DNA of 64,000 nucleotides from Oikopleura dioica. Lineage: Eukaryota; Animalia; Chordata. Of the stretch, positions 12,262 to 58,542 are shown piece after piece (position 1 is the first letter of the stretch; every line of letters begins with the position of its first letter). The notes beneath the pieces are model-generated. The model did not search any database. It had not been told where the DNA came from and saw only the letters and a program-made list of their open reading frames with translations. Where the stretch lies: contig OU015569.1 in assembly GCA_907165135.1 (NCBI GenBank), forward strand, positions 6,572,001 through 6,636,000, given 5' to 3'. The position numbers and the translations under genes were made by a program.

Positions 12262-14361
12262 ATGACAAACGAAAACACAGAAATCATTATCGAGTCTGGC
12301 ACCTCGACAGAACAAGGTACACAACGCGTTAGTTGATTACTGCCAGTCGAGCTCACCGCGATTTTTAAGGGTCTTCTTCGAACGATGAGCCCTCGGTCAA
12401 GTGCCGGAAGAATACCGCCGCCCCCACAGCCGAAACTCGCCAAAGCGATTCAGGTAACAATCAAATCCTAAAGCCGAATTAGGTGTGAATTAATACGCTG
12501 CCAAGAAACACAACTCGAGCCACAAATATTTGCAAAAAAGCATGATTTTATGGCCCCGCATAACATTTGGAGTATTTCTCGATCTGGAAGGCGTTTCTCT
12601 TCGACTCTACTGTAGAATTAACTCGCGCTTTTCAATTTTTATAAATCGAGAAACAAGGGATCTATCAAGGTAAACAAAGTGAAACGAACAGATAAAAAAG
12701 ATTGGATTTGAGCCTTTTGCACCATAAAAAGTGTTTTATATGAATCAGGAATCTGCGAACATGAGAAGTTGAGGTAGATTTGCTTTCGACATTATTCTTA
12801 TTAATTTGAGCTCATTCAAGCGTTCTTTAATTTTGAAAAAATTAGATTTGGCTATCAATTGTCAATTGAAGTGCCTAGTAGTCTTGAAAAGTATTCTTTT
12901 ATTTGGTTGAAATAATAGCCTCGGCGTAAATGGCTAAAGCGCATTGTTATGAATGAGAAGAGCGTTTTTTCTTGATCTCGGCGCGTGGTCAAGAGAGCGA
13001 GCAGCCAACTTGCTCGAAAGGAAGAAAACGATTTTTACGAGCTTCAGAAAAATTACGATATTGAGAGAGACGAATCAATTCTCACAATTTTTTTGTTCAG
13101 ACTCTTTTCATGAAGAAGACGAAAGTGATCGAGCGATGCTGATACAGAGATCCAGTGCCAGAAGACGGCAGAAGGAGTCCACGTCAAAGTTTAAATCGCC
13201 ACAAAAGAGATACGTCCCAGAATGGTGGAAAACATTTGTCATTTTAATCTACTTGCAATGCTGTCTGTTTCTGATGACGGTGACGGAAGCAATCGTCCAC
13301 GACAAAGTGCCAGGTATTCAACCCTGTTCATTTTTCGGCTTTTTGACTTGTTTAGATCAAAACACCACTGCTCCTCTTCCTGATATCGCATGGGAATTGA
13401 CCGCAAAGTGGCCCTTCGAGACTGAATTTGGGAATCACCTCTGTTTCAAACTTACAGAAATCATTATTCTCTGCCTCACAGTTCTAGGTAAAAAACACCT
13501 TCTTTTTCACAAAATTACGAATGATTTAGCTCATCTCCACTTTATCACTCATGTTCACTTCTCGATCGTCTTTCGTCGCTGGTTATTTCACGTCGGAACA
13601 GGTTTTGCTCGCTCTCCTGCATTTTTGCTAAATGTTATTAGTCTATCTGTACAGAGTGCTGACTATCTCCGTCACAATCCTTCCAGTGCCCAAGTTACCG
13701 CCGAACCACTGCATGCCAAAGACGGACGGCTCGGTCGAACAGATTCTCCAAAGAGCATGGAAGACACTCTCTGGCGCAGGGATGGAAATCTGAGCGGCAC
13801 GGCACGGCACGGCACAGCGGCATGGACATGACTGGCATGAATATGTGTGGGTAAGTCATTATTATAGCCGTCTGAGCTTTTCTTATATAATATTCAGTGA
13901 TTACATGTACTCTGGTCACACTTCGATCATCACTTCTTCGGCGCTCTTCATTTTGGAGTATTCTCCGCGCCGCTGGTGGGTCTACCACTACATCGTTCAA
14001 ATTGCCGCCATCATCGGCGTTTTTTGCATTCTAGTCGCTCATGAGGTACCATCACTTATTCCCTTTTCGTTCCTCCTATTTACCAATTCAGCACTACACG
14101 ATCGACATAATCATTGCTTATTACATCGTGTCCAACCATTTCTGGATGTATCACACGATGGCCGCTATTCCTGACGTAACGAGTCCTACTGGGTCATCTA
14201 CTCGGGTCCCGCTCACCCGAGCCTGGTGGTGGCGCATTTTCAGATTCATGGAAGTGAACGTTCCAAGCCCGCTGCCGATCGCGCACGAGAATCCGCTTCT
14301 TCGCGTGCATCGCTATTTAAAAACATTCACAGCGAAGACGCAGCCTCTAAGTCCGATCTAA
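12262..14361 (+). CDS. SGMS: Sphingomyelin synthase
   Basis: HDKVP..PLPD; SIVFRRWL; catalytic CGDYMYSGHT and HYTIDIIIAY; LEYSPRRWW; FWMYHTMA. Two 5' exons (from 12262) join in phase across a 647-nt intron at 12454-13100. Confidence 0.92.
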
Positions 14362-15416
14362 CTCGAGCTCTGAATGTCTGAATGAAACTGAAGTAGCCAT
14401 GAAACACACACAAGCGCCTGGTTATTTGTATGATGCCTTTTGCTGACGGGTATTTATTTTTCTTGTAGGTATTGCCAATTTATTTTCTCCCGAAAGTAAC
14501 CAGACGCGTGTCAATTTATCTTTACTTTTATCAATCCTAGTTCCAAGCTCTTGTATCTGTTCCTGTATTATATTTTTCTTTGGGCGAGATAACGACTTTC
14601 CCCGTGTTGAGTATCTCACTCTCTTCTCAAGGTACAAAGATCTTCTGGTTCCGACAAAACTCTTCTTCGCTTTCCTGTTTATTCCTTTTCGAAAACAAGA
14701 CCTCTTTACTGAAACTCTTTCCGCTCATTTTGTCACATAACCTCACCACAGGTTGGTGATCCTATTTTCGATTATGCAAGTTCAACGCGAAGAATAGTAC
14801 ATTACAGATGATCCGCTCCTTGAAGCCAACAAGGAGTCCGTAAATCTGAGTATTTATTGGCAAGTGTTTTTACTGATATGCTATAACTTTAATTCTTCAT
14901 TCTTCCTTTGTCTTATATTTTTTCTGTTCATACATTATATATTTTCTGCTGTATATCGAACTTTTCTTAAATACCTAACAAACAACGATGACCTAATAAA
15001 TACTTCAAATAAAGTTATATCTTTCTAAAAGGAATGTTTCCACCTTCTGATGGATATTCCTTTCGCCTTCGAGAATTTCAGCATTGCGCAGTCTGCATGA
15101 AAATTGAGACTTCAAAAAGGGATTTCTGTTGGTGAAATATTGAGAATCTCTTTCTTCTAGTGCACACCTGACTCTTAAGGGAATCAAGATGAATTTAAAT
15201 ATCGGACGGAAAAGATCTACTAGTAGAAGGTTGTCTTATTAGCATCAGATTGGATCATTTATCTCAATCAGCGGGATGACCAGTTCCGATCTTGGTGGTT
15301 ATCACCTGCGCAACCGAACTTTTTCGGTGTCTGCTTATTGATCACTTTACGCCCTCTTTCGGTTGATCTTATACATTTAATCGGGCACTGAGCCCACACT
15401 CTATCAAAAAACTAAA

Positions 15417-16151
15417 ATGTCAGACAATATCTACTTGAAATATGACGGCTTCGAAGGATACCCAAACTTCCAGATTCGATTGAATCCGATGGGTACAAAA
15501 GACTGCGACTTCGAGCTGTCCTGCAAATGCAAATTCCGAGTTCCAGATATTCCTCTCAGAGATGCGACTTGTGAAGGAACGCTCATCGAAGACATCTACC
15601 AAGGACTACCGATCTTCTTGGCCGGCCTGTACAAAGGGGAAGTCGTCCAGAAAGAGGAATCGCTGTGGAATGTTCCCGATTTCAAACCTGCAAAGCATCT
15701 CTTTTGCCCGAAAGATGAGGGGCAGGTACAGCACGTCAAGGAATTCGTCGAGCAAAGACGGGCAATGCTCATTGAGTCTGGAGGGAAAGAAATGGAGAAC
15801 TGCAATTGCTGCCTCTACGGCAACGACACATTGCAGACGATGATGCACCTGATTATTTTCCGAAGCACAGTCCAAGGATCCTCCCACTCGTCAACATCCA
15901 GAGACTTGACTTCGGCAACGAAAACAGCGAGGAAGGGCCCGCGCCTACCAAAGGCCGTCAAGAAAGTGCTCCAGAAGGCTCACAAGGATCTCGAAGCCGC
16001 GACAAAGCCATACACGTCTGATGAAAAGATGGCAGAGCTGTTCAAAGAGACCGTCGGAGTCAAGCCACAGAAGAAATTGATCAAGAAGAAGCCGAATCAA
16101 GGAAAAGCACCAAATAACATCCGCAAGACGAAGAAGCCAGCACGTCTATGA
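15417..16151 (+). CDS. Orphan Cys-rich protein with Lys-rich tail, copy 1 (intronless, 244 aa)
   Basis: Single ORF; strong similarity to copy 2 with many synonymous third-position differences; AATAAA at about 16214. Confidence 0.8.
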   Translation: MSDNIYLKYDGFEGYPNFQIRLNPMGTKDCDFELSCKCKFRVPDIPLRDATCEGTLIEDIYQGLPIFLAGLYKGEVVQKEESLWNVPDFKPAKHLFCPKDEGQVQHVKEFVEQRRAMLIESGGKEMENCNCCLYGNDTLQTMMHLIIFRSTVQGSSHSSTSRDLTSATKTARKGPRLPKAVKKVLQKAHKDLEAATKPYTSDEKMAELFKETVGVKPQKKLIKKKPNQGKAPNNIRKTKKPARL

Positions 16152-16718
16152 GAAGTTTTCCGTCAGATCGAAACTGCCACTTGTCTACCTGTACTATTCT
16201 ATTCCATACTAAAAATAAACCAAGAGGAACGGTCAACTCATGGTAATAATAATATTATTAAATTTGTAGAAACTCTCTCCGATGGAGTTCATAAGTCTTT
16301 TCCATGGCCTGATAATTTTAGACTAAAAACTTTTAGTTCGCGTAGATGAGGTTTCAATTTGAGCGGGGTTACTCTCTTGCGCTCGGGCGTTATTGTGTGG
16401 TAGCGCGATGTGGTGTCGCCCGAAACTGTGTGTCCATCCCGATCGCTCATGTTTTGAGTGCTGATTGGCTGTGATTTTAATAATCGGCCCTTATTGGGCA
16501 ACTAAGAAATCTTATTGCAATTCCCGAAAGAAAAAGCAACTCCTGGATCAATTCAAAGAGAGCCGAAGTAGGGGGTGACCTTGTTAATTCTAGAGTAGGT
16601 TCATGTATTGCCTTTCATTTCGGGTAAGGCTGAGCGTCCCCACAAATTGTAGGCTACAACGAGCAAGGCACGTGCACCTACTTACAGGATGAACAAGGTC
16701 ACCGTCAATTACATTAAA

Positions 16719-17799
16719 ATGTCGGACAATATTGTCAATATGTTCGTGAAATTCAATGGCTTCGAAGGATTCCCTGACTTCCAGATTCGGATGAATCAGA
16801 TGGGAACTGGCGACTGCGATTTCGAGCTCTCCTGCAAATGCAAATTTCGAGTTCCAGACATTCCTCTCAGAGACGCCACTTGTGAAGGGACACTCATGGA
16901 AGACATCTACAGAGGACTTATGACATTCTTGGCCTGTGTGTACAAAGGAGAAATCGTCCAGAGAGAGCAATCTCTTTGGAAGGACCCAGATTTCGTTCCT
17001 GCAAAGCATCTCTTTTGCCCTGAAGATGAGCAGCAAGTGGAGCACGTCAAGGAATTCATCGCGAAAAGACGGGCAATGCTCATGACGACTGGAGGCAAAG
17101 AAATGGAGAACTGCAACTGCTGTCTTTTTGGAAACGATACAATGCAGACTATGGGTCGAAACAGACTACCACTATAGACTGGACTTCAGCATGATTTGTT
17201 GATTTTTGTCCAAATTTCTACCCCTGTTACAGACAATAATGCACATGGTTCTTTTCACAAACACCGTTCAAGGCGCTTCTCCCTCTTCAACATCAAGCAA
17301 CTTTGCTCCGGCGACGAAAACATCGAGGAAGGGCCCGCGCCTACCAAAGGCACGTTTTTAAATGTTCTAATTTTGTAGCCCTGTTCTAAGTAATAATCAT
17401 TTACTTTTACAAAAAAAAAGCGTGAAAGGCTGTCAAGAAAGTCCTGCAGAAGGCGCACAAGAATCTCGAAGCGGCGACTAACCCATTTACTTCTGATGAA
17501 AAAATGGCAGAGCTGTTCAAGGCAGAGTTGCAAAATCTAATAGATTGCCGATTGTATTTTTAGCTGATTTAATACTATTAATTATTACTAATTTATAAGT
17601 AGTACATAATTTAAAACTATGTACTATAGTTACTATAATACTATAAAATTTATAGTATAAATTACTAAATTTTCAACTCTGGTCCAAGGAGGCTGAAATC
17701 AACGAAGATAAAGGCCCGAAAAGTGCATCGAAGAAAAAGCAGAAGCAAGGAAAGACACCGAACAACACCCGCAAGACAAAGAAGCCGACACGCCTCTAA
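16719..17799 (+). CDS. Orphan Cys-rich protein, copy 2 (three introns absent from copy 1)
   Basis: Aligns to copy 1 after removing 17154-17232 (GG-AG), 17350-17428 (GC-AG) and 17522-17688 (GC-AG); homologous 3' UTR through AAAATAAACCAAGA. Confidence 0.75.
17351..17424. mobile_element. 74-bp MITE-like insertion forming intron 2 of orphan copy 2
   Basis: 5-bp direct repeat AAAGG at 17346-17350 and 17425-17429; ends CACGTTTTT / AAAAAGCGTG (8 of 9 inverted match, partly low complexity); single AAAGG in copy 1. Confidence 0.55.
17523..17681. mobile_element. 159-bp hAT-like MITE forming intron 3 of orphan copy 2
   Basis: TIR CAGAGTTG(C)AAAAT ... ATTTTCAACTCTG; 8-bp TSD GTTCAAGG / GTCCAAGG (7 of 8); very AT-rich core with palindromes; absent from copy 1. 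Confidence 0.75.
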
Positions 17800-18037
17800 G
17801 AATTTTCCCCAAACTGTGTCACTGCCCCTTATCTTGCATAGCTTGATAGCATACCGAAAATAAACCAAGATTAACACAGACCAAGAGGGAGAATACTTCC
17901 GAAGAATTCAAACTCTTTTGTTAGCATGTTTTACAGAAAATAATTATCTTATTCATAATTTGTAGGAACAGACGGTGCAGGACCAATAATCGAAATTGTC
18001 GATGATTTCTAGACACTTTTTCACAAGAAAAAAGTTT

Positions 18038-18110
18038 TGACCACGATGGGACTCGAACCCACAACTTCCTGATTCGAAGTCAGACGCCATATCCATTAGG
18101 CCACGCGGCC
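18038..18110 (-). tRNA. trnR-TCG: tRNA-Arg (anticodon TCG)
   Basis: GGCCGCG TG GCCT AATGGATA TGGC G TCTGA CT-TCG-AA TCAGG AAGTT GTGGG TTCGAGT CCCAT CGTGGTC A folds as a cloverleaf with A and B boxes; a T6 Pol III terminator lies just downstream. Confidence 0.93.
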
Positions 18111-51910: not shown

Positions 51911-53970
51911 ATGACGCACTACCTCCACGAAGCAGTCAATCCCTTCCGCTTTGACCTCGAAATACCCTGGTATCGATACATACAGGTACTTCACTCGAGA
52001 AACGTGTTTTTTACGTAAGATAGGCACCGTCTTCGTTTTCTTGTTAATATTGACATTGATCTTGTTTCGGCTTAATTTGATAATCTGGTTCGATTCTTCT
52101 TCGCGACTCTCATTTTCTTCTAGATCGTCATCGCTACTTTCACACTCGTTCCTTTCCGAATCTGCGCCTCAATTCTAGCCGCGACGGCGATCTACATAGC
52201 AGGCGTGATCACAACAATTGGTCTTCCTCTTCAAGCAGATGAGTACGACATTGTTGGATTCCGATCAAAGCTGCAGTATTTTCTCACTCGCATTTGCTAC
52301 GGCTTCTGGCGAATATGCCTGGGCGTACGCGTTACCACCAAGGGAACTGCCGTTTCCAAAGACAAAGCGCAAGTGCTTGTGCTAGGCCCACATTCCACAG
52401 TCTATGACACGATGATCGCTGACCAGGTGCGAACTTGCTCTCAATTAACGCCCCTTTCCAATGATTCTTCAGATTCCACACTGTCCATTTCCATGGACTT
52501 TGGTCGGAGGAACGTATGGCAACGAATTCTCGTATCGAATGTTTCGCTCGTTAGGCTCAATCTTTGTGGACAGAACGGATCGTTCGTCCACCTCGAACGC
52601 AATCGAAGTGATAAACCAGCGTGTCGCCGATCCTAAATGGCCGCAGCTGATGATCTGGCCCGAGGGGACTACCCACAACCGTCTCGGAATGATGAAGTTC
52701 AAGAACGGAGCTTTCAATCCTGGAGCCGTCGTCCAGCCACTTACCTTGAAGTGGACCAACAACTGGGACACCTTCACCTGGTGCTTCATGGGTCCCAGTT
52801 TTCTGCAGATGATTTATCTCACTCTCTGCCAGTTTAGTATCAACGTCGAAATAAACTTTCTCGATCCCGTCACTCCGACCAAAGAGGAAAAAGGTAAAGT
52901 TGAATTCAACTCATTTGAAATGAGTCATTTCCCTTTCCCCTGGCCTCGGAATTTCGATTATTCAACTAAAAATTAAAACCCTGAAATTTGACTTTACAGG
53001 CTTTACAGGCCTGTGAAACCTAAAAAACAGGACCTGTATCCTGTGTTCTTTATCCTGTCCTGCTTCCTGTGTTGCAGATGGGCCCTAAAACAAAATCCCT
53101 GTTCCTGTTTACAGGATTCCGAGGCCAGCCTTTCCCTTCGAGTTTATTTCTCGCCTTTTGACAAACTATTTCAGCAAATCCATCTCTATTCGCTGAACGC
53201 GTGCAAAAAGTCATGGCTGACTCGCTGGAAATCCCTGCTCTCAATTTAACCCGCGACGATGGGCTCGCACACATGAAAGCGACTGAATATGGATTGCCTG
53301 GGCACGTCGCGAACATCGATATCGAATCGTACAGAAAACAAAGCGGCCTCTCCCGAGAAAAATATACCAAGAACTCAAACAGTTCGCCTCCCTTAGTCAG
53401 AAAAAAGGTTGAATCATTAATCAATTCGCGTTTGCTTACTACTCTCTTCCAGAGCTCGCGGATTACGACAACTTATGCACTTTTCTTCAACTCCCAATCG
53501 GCCTTTTTACAAAGCAAGTGTTCGCCAAATACGACAAAGATGGCATATTCTGCTTCACTTTCAAAAACTTCCTCGACAGAAGATTGGGAACATTCTATCC
53601 TGCATCAGAGCGAATTAACTACGAGAAGTTGATGGAGGTAAAACGGGTTTAATACTCATCAGAGATTCACTATTTCGTCAAGTGCATGGACGTCGACAAC
53701 GACGGAGCGATTTCACTTGGCGATATTCAAGCAGTTTTTCCAAAAATCTTCGGCGGCCAGGCGCCCATCTTTGCACAAATCTGGGATCTCCATTCCGACG
53801 GACGCAAAGTATTAGACCTAGTCGATCTCAAGCGCATTTGGTAAGAATTTCAAATTCTTTGCTCTTTGTTGATGAAAAAATTAAGCCACGAATATCCCGA
53901 GTACGCTTTTATATACGAATGCTTCCTGGAGTCACGGGAGAACTCACGAGTTTCCCGCGTTCTCGGTTGA
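51911..53970 (+). CDS. LPCAT: Lysophosphatidylcholine acyltransferase (LPCAT1/2 type, EF-hand)
   Basis: PHSTVYD (HxxxxD), IFVDR, WPQLMIWPEGT, FKNGAFNPGAVVQP, WDTFTW; EF-hand DVDNDGAIS; YPEYA. Confidence 0.92.
52940..53128. mobile_element. MITE copy A (189 bp) inside an LPCAT intron
   Basis: Perfect 13-bp TIR CTGGCCTCGGAAT; perfect 8-bp TSD CCTTTCCC at 52932-52939 and 53129-53136; homologous to the right end of copy B. Confidence 0.92.
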
Positions 53971-56849: not shown

Positions 56850-58542
56850 ATGCACAGACGAAAGAGACGTGCTCGAATTCTTATTATCATATCAGTCTTA
56901 GTTCTTATTTATGGGGAAACTGGTTGCTTCTTTCAACAATACATAAGATGGCCAAGAAAGGGTTTCTCTGATCTGATGTAGTTTCGTCCCTCACTAGAAT
57001 CTTGGGATTGCATCTTCTTGGCAACTCAAAATTAGGTTCAGCAGCAGTGCAGCATCTGTTCTTCTTGTTGCCGATCCACAAATTCAAGGATTCCGGGATG
57101 AACCAGCGGGAATTCTAGGCGTGATAACCAGATGGGACTCCGACCAGTATTTGTCAAGGGGTTTTTATTGGGCTTCACGGGCGGTAAAACCGAATCTAAC
57201 GATTTTCCTTGGTGATTTGATAGACGAGGGGTATTCTGCATCAGGAAAGAGATTCTGATAATTATTAATGATAGGTAATCGTTGATAGCTTTACATTAAT
57301 AGGGAGTAAACTAAAAGAATCGCAAATACTCAGACTCCGAATATGAACTCTATGTAAATCGGTTCAAGAAAATTTTTCCAGTCTCCGATGAAAAGGTTAT
57401 CTATCTTCCTGGTGACAACGACATAGGAGGCGAAGGTGGTGAACGAGTCACCAAGTGAGAATAGTTTCAAGTTAGCTATCAAGTAAAGCTATCTTAGTCG
57501 CCATCTTGAGCGATTCCACAGAAGTTTCTCAACAGACTTTGCGGTTTTAGCAGGGCGTCGTTTCCAGGCATCCCACGAGATCGAAAGAGAAGAGCCAAGA
57601 ATACTGGAAAAGTCAGATGTTTTGCTACGACATTTTCCAATGGGTTCGCCAATACCATCCGTGGGTAAGCTCATCCTGTCAGCGCACAACCACGTCGGTG
57701 AGATCTGGCCTCGGAATTCTGACCTGTCTAAAAACCTGAAACAGGTCCTGTTTTTTGGACCCTGTCCTGTTTCCTGTCTTGCATTTCGAGACCAAAATAA
57801 ACCTGTAAACAGGCCTGTTAACAGGAAATACAGGAAAAACAGGAAAAAACGCCTGTATACAGGAACAGCCCTGTAAAAGTGAAACAGGCCTGTCAAAAAA
57901 TTGCAGGAAAACAGGCGAAAAATGGGGAATATCAGGTATTTTTCGTAAAAATTTTCTTGGAGTTCCCTTCAAATATGTTATAAAGAATCTTTTATAGTTG
58001 AAACTGTCTACAGACATGATTATAACGAGAAAAAAATTCTTAATTTTGATTCTTCAAGAAAAAATTAAAACCCTGAAATTTGAGTTTACAGGCCTGCAAA
58101 GCCTGTGAAACCTGTAAAACAGGACCTGTTCCTGTGTTTTTATCCTGTCCTGTTTCCTGTTTTGCAAATGGGCCAAAAAATAAAATCCCTGTTCCTGTCC
58201 CTGTTACTGTTTACAGGATTCCGAGGCCAGGGTGAGATGAGGCAGCATCACCGGAGTAAAATGACTAGAAGCGTTCTTCGTCATCTAAAAGGAAAATTCG
58301 GAGCGGAAAATATTGAAATTCTTATGCCCACGTGTTCCTACAGGATGGGAGTCTATAAAATGGCATATGGGTATCTAACATTTATTAAATTATTGTCTTT
58401 ATCATGCAATTTCAGTGCTCTTATTCTTGGAGAAAACGACGAATTCGAGTTCATCCCCTTACACATTCCAGGCCGCTTTCCTTTCCTCATAATTTACATT
58501 TTGCTTTGTTTTCTATGGCTTCTATATTTCTGTATTGAATAA
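56850..58542 (+). CDS. MPPE1: MPPE1/Cdc1-like metallophosphoesterase with a MITE in a coding exon
   Basis: N-terminal TM; LLVADPQ, FLGDLIDEG, YLPGDNDIGG, LLRHFP, LILSAHNH, EILMPTCSYRMG; C-terminal TM. Confidence 0.82.
57705..58230. mobile_element. MITE copy B (526 bp) inserted in a coding exon
   Basis: TIR CTGGCCTCGGAAT(T/C)CTG; perfect 8-bp TSD GGTGAGAT at 57697-57704 and 58231-58238; dense CCTGT/ACAGG subterminal motifs; no transposase. Confidence 0.93.
57732..58192. repeat. Internal ~75-bp direct repeat within MITE B
   Basis: 57732-57806 resembles 58108-58192, including an exact 17-mer CCTGTCCTGTTTCCTGT at 57761 and 58144. Confidence 0.7.

Follow-up and report, generated by a model that had tools for sequence, protein, structure and literature searches.

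Three short insertions spliced as introns in one copy of a tandemly duplicated Oikopleura orphan gene, one of them a putative hAT-like transposon

In the larvacean Fritillaria borealis, exonic insertions of MITEs (miniature inverted-repeat transposable elements) are an established source of non-canonical introns (Henriet et al. 2019, summarised by PMC11282704; bioRxiv 10.1101/2025.08.15.670264). As these sources summarise it, the splice sites correspond to the terminal inverted repeats (TIRs) of the elements and are mostly AG-AC or AG-AT, and most introns of the genome are affected. Introners, described in Micromonas and Aureococcus among others, are spliced as an element plus one copy of its target-site duplication (TSD), which is co-opted for one of the splice sites (Huff et al. 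2016; Gozashti et al. 2022, PMC9860276). Their typical hosts are aquatic organisms, and the survey text of Gozashti et al. does not mention Oikopleura (PMC9860276). For Oikopleura dioica itself, where about 11-12% of introns are non-GT/AG and many of these are GA-AG, a 2012 review lists in its Table 1 (PMC3443670) intron gains that Denoeud et al. 2010 attributed to transposon insertion. A different route has been proposed in Daphnia, in which recently gained introns flanked by short direct repeats are attributed to double-strand-break repair (Li et al. 2009; PMC4202315). Here we examine a locus in the X-specific region of the Okinawan O. dioica assembly (assembly paper PMC8008620), where two tandem copies of an orphan gene lie within the 64-kb stretch of DNA that we call the window, G000:C2:6572001-6636000; genome-wide searches covered the whole assembly of 64.28 Mb in 19 contigs. 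We consider it likely that, after tandem duplication of this intronless gene, copy 2 was hit repeatedly by short insertions that are now spliced as introns, and that the third of these introns is a hAT-like MITE.

Copy 1 (15417-16151, forward strand) is an uninterrupted 244-codon open reading frame (ORF) of 735 nt and belongs to an orphan family restricted to Oikopleura. Copy 2 runs from the homologous ATG at 16719 to the homologous stop at 17799 (1081 nt), and in a pairwise alignment it is collinear with copy 1 apart from three insertions of 85, 79 and 167 nt. Each insertion lies between short direct repeats along which its placement can slide: insertion 1 (17145-17229) by 0-5 nt along CAGAC, insertion 2 (17346-17424) by 0-6 nt along AAAGGC, and insertion 3 (17518-17684) by 0-5 nt along an exact CAAGG, which over 8 nt reads GTTCAAGG/GTCCAAGG (GT[T/C]CAAGG, one mismatch). 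The corresponding empty sites are present in copy 1, with one copy of each repeat: TTGCAGAC at 15831-15838, ACCAAAGG at 15947-15954 and GTTCAAAG at 16040-16047. At each of the three junctions the repeat reaches 5-6 nt, more than the splice consensus by itself would lead one to expect, with a rough joint estimate, reasoned and not calculated, of ~1e-4 or less. An earlier reading of the window, made from the letters alone and referred to here as the sequence-only reading, had described an intronless copy 1 and three repeat-flanked insertions in copy 2, all of which would need non-GT donors. The alignment and a listing of the possible boundaries agree on every point, with 0 allowed boundary pairs beginning with GT. 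Another in-frame ATG lies 30 nt 5' of the homologous start of copy 2 (16689-16718); it would add ten residues, MNKVTVNYIK, and has no counterpart in copy 1.

Reads were mapped onto 14300-17900 (3.6 kb) from three raw laboratory RNA sequencing (RNA-seq) runs and one oligo-dT marine metatranscriptome (run X8). The metatranscriptome yielded one 286-nt complementary DNA (cDNA) contig, of depth 2, that has 0 mismatches to the exons of copy 2 and skips all three insertions, joining 17144 to 17230, 17345 to 17425 and 17517 to 17685. It consists of 13 letters corresponding to 17132-17144, followed by 17230-17345, 17425-17517 and 17685-17750. The 13 letters from exon 1, which are loosely placed directly before 17230, differ from copy 1 at three positions. 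Because this poly(A)-derived contig matches the exons of copy 2 and skips all three insertions, we conclude that all three are spliced out of copy 2 RNA. The sequence-only reading had held that they are probably spliced and had named copy 2 cDNA as one of its checks.

The spliced coding sequence has 750 nt, with 249 open codons and one terminal stop. The observed junctions are compatible with GC..AG boundaries for intron 2 (17350-17428, 79 nt; slide range 17346-17430) and intron 3 (17522-17688, 167 nt). For intron 1 there are six options, CA..TA, AG..AC, GA..CA, AC..AG, CT..GA and TA..AC, and we draw it as AC..AG (17148-17232, 85 nt; slide range 17145-17234). Placed in this way, all three introns are phase 0, and the exons on the forward strand are exon 1 (16719-17147, 429 nt if intron 1 is AC..AG; its end could fall anywhere within 17144-17149), exon 2 (17233-17349, 117 nt), exon 3 (17429-17521, 93 nt) and exon 4 (17689-17799, 111 nt including the stop codon). 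These would be the dinucleotides in use, and removal is presumably carried out by the U2 spliceosome.

Intron 3 has the structure expected of a transposon. In a repeat scan, inverted repeats of 12 nt, CAGAGTTGCAAA (17523-34) and TTTTCAACTCTG (17670-81), emerged exactly inside the 8-nt direct repeat. The putative element thus delimited spans 17523-17681 (159 nt, no strand assigned), with a left TIR at 17523-17537, a right TIR at 17667-17681 and TSDs at 17515-17522 and 17682-17689 that are 7/8 identical. The 167 nt that are skipped in the cDNA equal this element plus 8 nt, that is, the element and one copy of the TSD, and the frame is open after splicing. More precisely, intron 3 comprises the last base of the left TSD, the 159-nt element and the first seven bases of the right TSD. 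An AAG|G within the TSD provides the 3' AG and, combined with the first base of the TIR, also the GC donor.

The ends of this element recur across the genome. We searched for paired TIRs (CAGAGTTGCAAA... / ...TTTKCAACTCTG) 60-300 nt apart with at most two mismatches, using the reversed pattern as a control, and obtained 54 forward and 56 reverse matches vs 1+1 for the control; by this count the genome would hold about 55 elements with the ends of intron 3. Perfect 8-bp TSDs flank 17 of 20 family copies that were fetched, the others having 7/8 (two copies) or 6/8 (one copy), and 30 of 40 in a larger set. Family elements are 129-324 nt long. In a blind scan of the window for TIRs with 8-bp TSDs, three structures emerged vs ~0.2 in shuffled sequence: intron 3 and two members of another family, which lie at 52940-53128 and 57705-58230 with the TIR CTGGCCTCGGAAT... 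and perfect 8-bp TSDs, CCTTTCCC and GGTGAGAT. TSDs of 8 bp and CAGAG-type termini are hallmarks of hAT elements. Intron 3 has an 8-bp TSD and the short YARNG-type TIRs of a multi-copy non-coding family, and on this evidence of ends and target sites we classify it as a MITE of hAT-like type. The label stops at 'hAT-like' because we found no autonomous partner with these ends.

Several observations concern the family more widely. Near-identical ORFs with a hAT dimerisation domain occur ~4.86 kb apart at G000:C1:636914/641782 and 732634/737494, with more copies on C4 and C5; the pairs look like a multi-copy hAT-like element, and the flanks that were fetched contain no CAGAGTTGCAAA termini. Six MITE copies (L056, L063, L069, L070, L071, L073) have the same TSD, GTAGGCAC, and near-identical sequence; the copy with that TSD probably sits inside a larger repeat that has itself been multiplied.

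Most copies appear to lie outside long reading frames. After in-silico excision of the element and comparison with random window positions, the median stop-free span across 40 copies was 207 nt vs 297 nt. Judged from sequence, two of the 40 stand out. On the minus strand at G000:C4:4000653-4000913 (L068), a copy of the CAGAGTTG... MITE splits an EGF/EGF_CA repeat exon in frame. Both flanks match EGF domains in one frame at E ~1e-16 to 1e-17, and removal of the element with one TSD rebuilds ...NVNECEQE|NMCSNNAKC..., with GA..AG available in the TSD (AACAGGAA/AATAGGAA). The other copy lies within a 308-codon open frame at G000:C1:5203181-5203379 (L075).

Introns 1 and 2 also contain matches to such termini. 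Using two variants of the family TIR, we found 13 positions in the window with at least 12/15 matches. The ends of intron 3 account for two of these, and introns 1 (17212-17226) and 2 (17369-17383) hold one each. The background expected in the 164 nt of these two introns is ~0.03 matches, giving a Poisson P of ~4e-4 for two or more. The match in intron 1 stops exactly 8 nt before the exon, abutting an 8-bp repeat. A candidate element at 17150-17226 (77 nt) would have the ends TATGGGTCGAAA and TTTCTACCCCTG, the right one being the 12/15 match to the family TIR, and 8-nt flanks ATGCAGAC (17142-17149) and TTACAGAC (17227-17234) that are 6/8 identical. Complementarity between the two ends is 9/12 (shuffle P 0.02). 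An intron made of 2 nt, a 77-nt element and 6 nt has the layout of a decayed hAT-like MITE, and most likely intron 1 is an element like intron 3 but older and decayed, flanked by its 8-bp repeat. Intron 2 has ends of its own, CACG...CGTG, beside AAAGG (shuffle P 0.055). Its TIR-like motif lies further in, between TTCTAATT (17365-17372) and TTCTAAGT (17384-17391), which are 11 nt apart; this motif may be what is left of a nested element that was largely deleted.

An alternative for these two introns, which we regard as unlikely, is that they are filler DNA from microhomology-mediated break repair, their repeats being microhomologies, and that intron 3 alone is a MITE. Classical non-homologous end joining is reported to be missing from O. 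dioica, which would rely on microhomology-mediated joining. The exact repeats of introns 1 and 2 measure 5-6 nt and not 8, the motif CAGACTA recurs within intron 1, and neither intron has relatives in the genome, all of which suit repair. Against it, no template turned up for either insert: the best local alignments of the two to the 4 kb around them score no better than shuffled sequence (P 0.29 and 0.57), and we rejected a templated origin from nearby sequence. Because of these alignments, a 23/32 likeness that the end of intron 1 bears to the middle of intron 2 was treated as chance. Repair also leaves unaddressed the 12/15 TIR matches held by each intron, which are rare in the window, the exact 8-nt offset of the intron 1 match beside a 6/8 repeat of the left flank, and the 9/12 complementarity of the intron 1 ends. 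A transposon origin appears the better account of intron 1, and may extend to intron 2.

Further searches with these termini gave little. One paired-TIR pattern drawn from the end of intron 1 and another drawn from the motif inside intron 2 each matched a single, unrelated place in the genome, and the paired CACG...CGTG ends of intron 2 had 0 genome matches. A single-end 17-mer of intron 1 had 20 genome matches vs 4 for its control, all heterogeneous. Pairing of the intron ends is possible in RNA folding, with z-scores of just -1.1 to -1.6.

To place the insertions in time, we turn to the relatives of the two copies. The family has at least 17 members in this genome, and all of them, copy 2 excepted, are single ORFs across the three sites. 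Uninterrupted at all three are copy 1, its wild allele (P0001/L014, 96% identical in protein), an intronless relative from a marine metagenome (P0002, locus L013) whose 5' flank resembles that of copy 1, the paralog L003 and at least 14 further paralogs. In a maximum-likelihood tree, (L003,(copy 2,(P0002,(copy 1,P0001)))), with clade support 100/99, the clade of copy 2 is nested among other intronless members. In L013 and copy 1 the empty sites are the same or nearly so; sites 1 and 2 of L013 are identical to the spliced junctions of copy 2, and site 3 is one base off the left TSD of copy 2. Copies 1 and 2 remain similar for 90-120 nt after the stop codon, further than the poly(A) signal (at 16214 in copy 1), which fits a duplication at the DNA level. 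Since the relatives are uninterrupted, copy 2 is nested in the family tree and intron 3 has TIRs with an 8-bp TSD, we favour gain of the three introns in copy 2 over their loss from copy 1; the insertions would then postdate the duplication.

The opposite history, in which the three introns are ancestral to both copies and copy 1 with the L013 lineage lost them all at once by recombination with reverse-transcribed mRNA, we think very improbable; reverse-transcriptase-mediated loss in copy 1 was the alternative raised by the sequence-only reading. One event would suffice for such a loss, the introns are confined to the 3' half of the gene, a pattern that cDNA-mediated loss predicts, and no similarity is detectable between the 5' flanks of the two copies. 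Yet the scenario still calls for three gains on the short stem after the L003 split, plus the loss, and so for more events. The TIRs and TSD of intron 3 are far less decayed than a synonymous divergence (dS) of 0.67 between the copies allows for neutral sequence predating the duplication. Copy 1 also bears no marks of a retrocopy, with no A-tract after the signal at 16214 and no flanking repeats, it still resembles copy 2 past the poly(A) signal, and at least 15 other paralogs are intronless too. Gain in copy 2, as that reading had supposed, is supported. A burst, as it pictured, is not shown: the 7/8 TSD and near-perfect TIRs of intron 3 contrast with the 6/8 TSD and 9/12 TIRs of intron 1, and this difference in decay suggests separate insertion events at different times.

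The spliced frame of copy 2 is under purifying selection. Between the copies, the ratio of non-synonymous to synonymous divergence (dN/dS, Nei-Gojobori) is 0.22 over the whole coding sequence (dS 0.67, dN 0.15; 69 synonymous and 78 non-synonymous differences). Downstream of the first insertion, in exons 2-4, it is 0.24 (34 synonymous and 39 non-synonymous differences), and exon 3, which separates introns 2 and 3, has a value of 0.05 (10 and 3). The sequence-only reading had argued for selection from about 17 synonymous differences around the insertions; selection is supported, and the count in exons 2-4 is 34. That copy 2 is instead a decaying gene full of transposons, with the cDNA contig derived from an insertion-free allele and not from splicing, is extremely unlikely: the contig is single, of low depth, from a wild population and gapped by 2 nt in exon 3, the protein-collection model of copy 2 (P0003) terminates inside intron 1, and copy 2 has a changed version of the family's conserved C-terminal motif, but the spliced frame is open for 249 codons, dN/dS stays low past the first insertion and lowest in exon 3, and the exons of the contig have 0 mismatches to the reference while another wild haplotype differs by 2.6%, which makes an allele free of these three insertions of different ages, on an otherwise identical haplotype, improbable.

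The protein itself offers few clues. It has no Pfam match, no sequence match in the PDB and no usable match in the Atlas. An AlphaFold model computed from the paralog alignment is confident for residues 1-150 (predicted local distance difference test, pLDDT, ~85-92) and predicts disorder for 153-244. The introns would sit at the end of the predicted folded domain and in the predicted disordered tail. Fold searches with the model gave no convincing match, with nothing at E<=0.001 in Foldseek, a best template-modelling (TM) score of 0.30 in the Atlas and a best Z of 5.0 with VIA-align. Profile searching of 1.84 billion representatives returned 44 proteins; the named ones that were checked are all from O. 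dioica, and the others come from marine assemblies. Paralog proteins in public databases are named Oidioi.mRNA.OKI2018_I69.XSR/chr2/PAR. The C-terminal motif, KKKPN(Q/K)GKAPN(N/A)IRKTKKP(A/T)(R/K)L (residues 223-244 of copy 1; paralogs L003 and L081-L094), is almost invariant among paralogs that are ~25% identical elsewhere, and copy 2 deviates from it with KKKQKQGKTPNNTRKTKKPTRL.

Two further features belong to the locus. A tRNA-Arg gene (anticodon TCG) lies on the opposite strand at 18038-18110, 240 nt past the stop codon of copy 2. The wild haplotype L014, an ENA metagenome contig 97.4% identical to the window over 14431-16301, carries at 1860-2250 a different repeat, which the reference does not have at this place and which is inserted after window position 16301, between copies 1 and 2. 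This repeat has at least 70 genome matches, often on both strands of one place (a long inverted structure), and is a polymorphic transposon insertion at the copy 1/copy 2 locus.

Several findings weigh against our interpretation. The RNA support is a single depth-2 contig from a wild sample, and in this contig 2 nt are missing at 17460, where exon 3 has CACA and the contig a single CA, through either an assembly error or a frameshift allele. The three laboratory RNA-seq runs (X12-X14) placed 0-2 poorly fitting reads over the mapped interval, including the 3' end of the neighbouring gene, and so are no test of expression. For intron 1, no boundary pair combines G at +1 with a terminal AG, and in introns 1 and 2 the inverted ends reach no more than marginal significance (P 0.02 and 0.055). 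Genome DNA searches with inserts 1 and 2 matched each insert itself only. The same was true of insert 3, whose AT-rich interior aligns with no other family copy, the 12-15 terminal nucleotides alone being common. Copies of the hAT dimerisation domain are present in the genome, but the flanks fetched around them hold no matching TIR, and we found no autonomous hAT element with these TIRs. Finally, searches for an ortholog of copy 2 from another lineage, with exon 1 as query, returned none from JGI metagenome contigs and just the window's own model from the protein collection, and for this reason the timing of the insertions rests on paralogs.

Taking both sides together, we propose the following course of events. 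Tandem duplication of DNA, at a depth corresponding to a dS of ~0.67, would have been followed by several short DNA insertions into the coding sequence of copy 2. The youngest of them, intron 3, would be a 159-nt non-autonomous hAT-like transposon that generated an 8-bp TSD. The duplicated target contains AAG|G, and the spliceosome would cut both TSD copies at the same offset (GC..AG), removing exactly the element and one TSD copy (167 nt) and restoring the original reading frame. Intron 1 (85 nt) would be an older, decayed element of the same kind, and intron 2 (79 nt) an insertion, possibly with the remnant of a nested element. Transposon insertion appears to be the mechanism at least for intron 3 and probably also for intron 1.

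Set beside the described systems, the locus resembles Fritillaria, as far as the summaries describe it: a non-autonomous DNA transposon, bounded by TIRs and a TSD, lies in a larvacean coding exon, is spliced at non-GT/AG sites and occupies lineage-specific positions. Unlike in Fritillaria, the sites here fall within the 8-bp TSD (GC..AG, with GA..AG available in another copy), and few of the ~55 family copies sit in exons. This contrast does not extend to intron 1, which allows no G..AG and could be either AC..AG or AG..AC. With introners it shares the splicing of an element plus one TSD copy, the TSD being co-opted for a splice site; but introners number hundreds to thousands of near-identical intronic copies, whereas here just the termini are common and most copies lie outside long ORFs. 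The Daphnia introns likewise have short direct repeats at both ends and a presence/absence contrast between close relatives, but at least intron 3 here has the TIRs and 8-bp TSD of a transposon family. Denoeud et al. 2010, to judge from the citing review, through which alone we compare, proposed the same route of gain in the same species, to which the present case adds an empty-site control in the same genome and a defined hAT-like family. A search of one literature library found no description of this MITE family or of this locus. The locus is an unusually complete new example of a known process, with one odd detail, an intron 1 that has no possible G...AG boundary.

A wider scheme can be put forward tentatively. 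In Okinawan O. dioica, hAT-like MITEs that are still or were recently active may make new spliceosomal introns, with the position of AG in the 8-bp target duplication setting the register (1+7, 2+6 or 3+5). The second base of the intron would thus be arbitrary, explaining the abundant G*-AG introns. Intron 1 would show the U2 spliceosome accepting a first base other than G (AC..AG), or else a Fritillaria-type AG..AC. Local hopping of hAT-type elements would explain why three or four insertions cluster within 540 bp.

The birth of spliceosomal introns in animals is seldom caught in the act. Within 2.4 kb, this locus brings together empty sites, a young and apparently transposon-made intron with its scars intact, a probable older one in decay and a third of unclear origin. 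It illustrates how a TSD can supply both splice sites and so render an exonic insertion harmless, and it offers a source, open to testing, for O. dioica's many non-GT introns. Intron 1, in turn, is a natural substrate for asking how far the spliceosome of this species departs from the G...AG rule.

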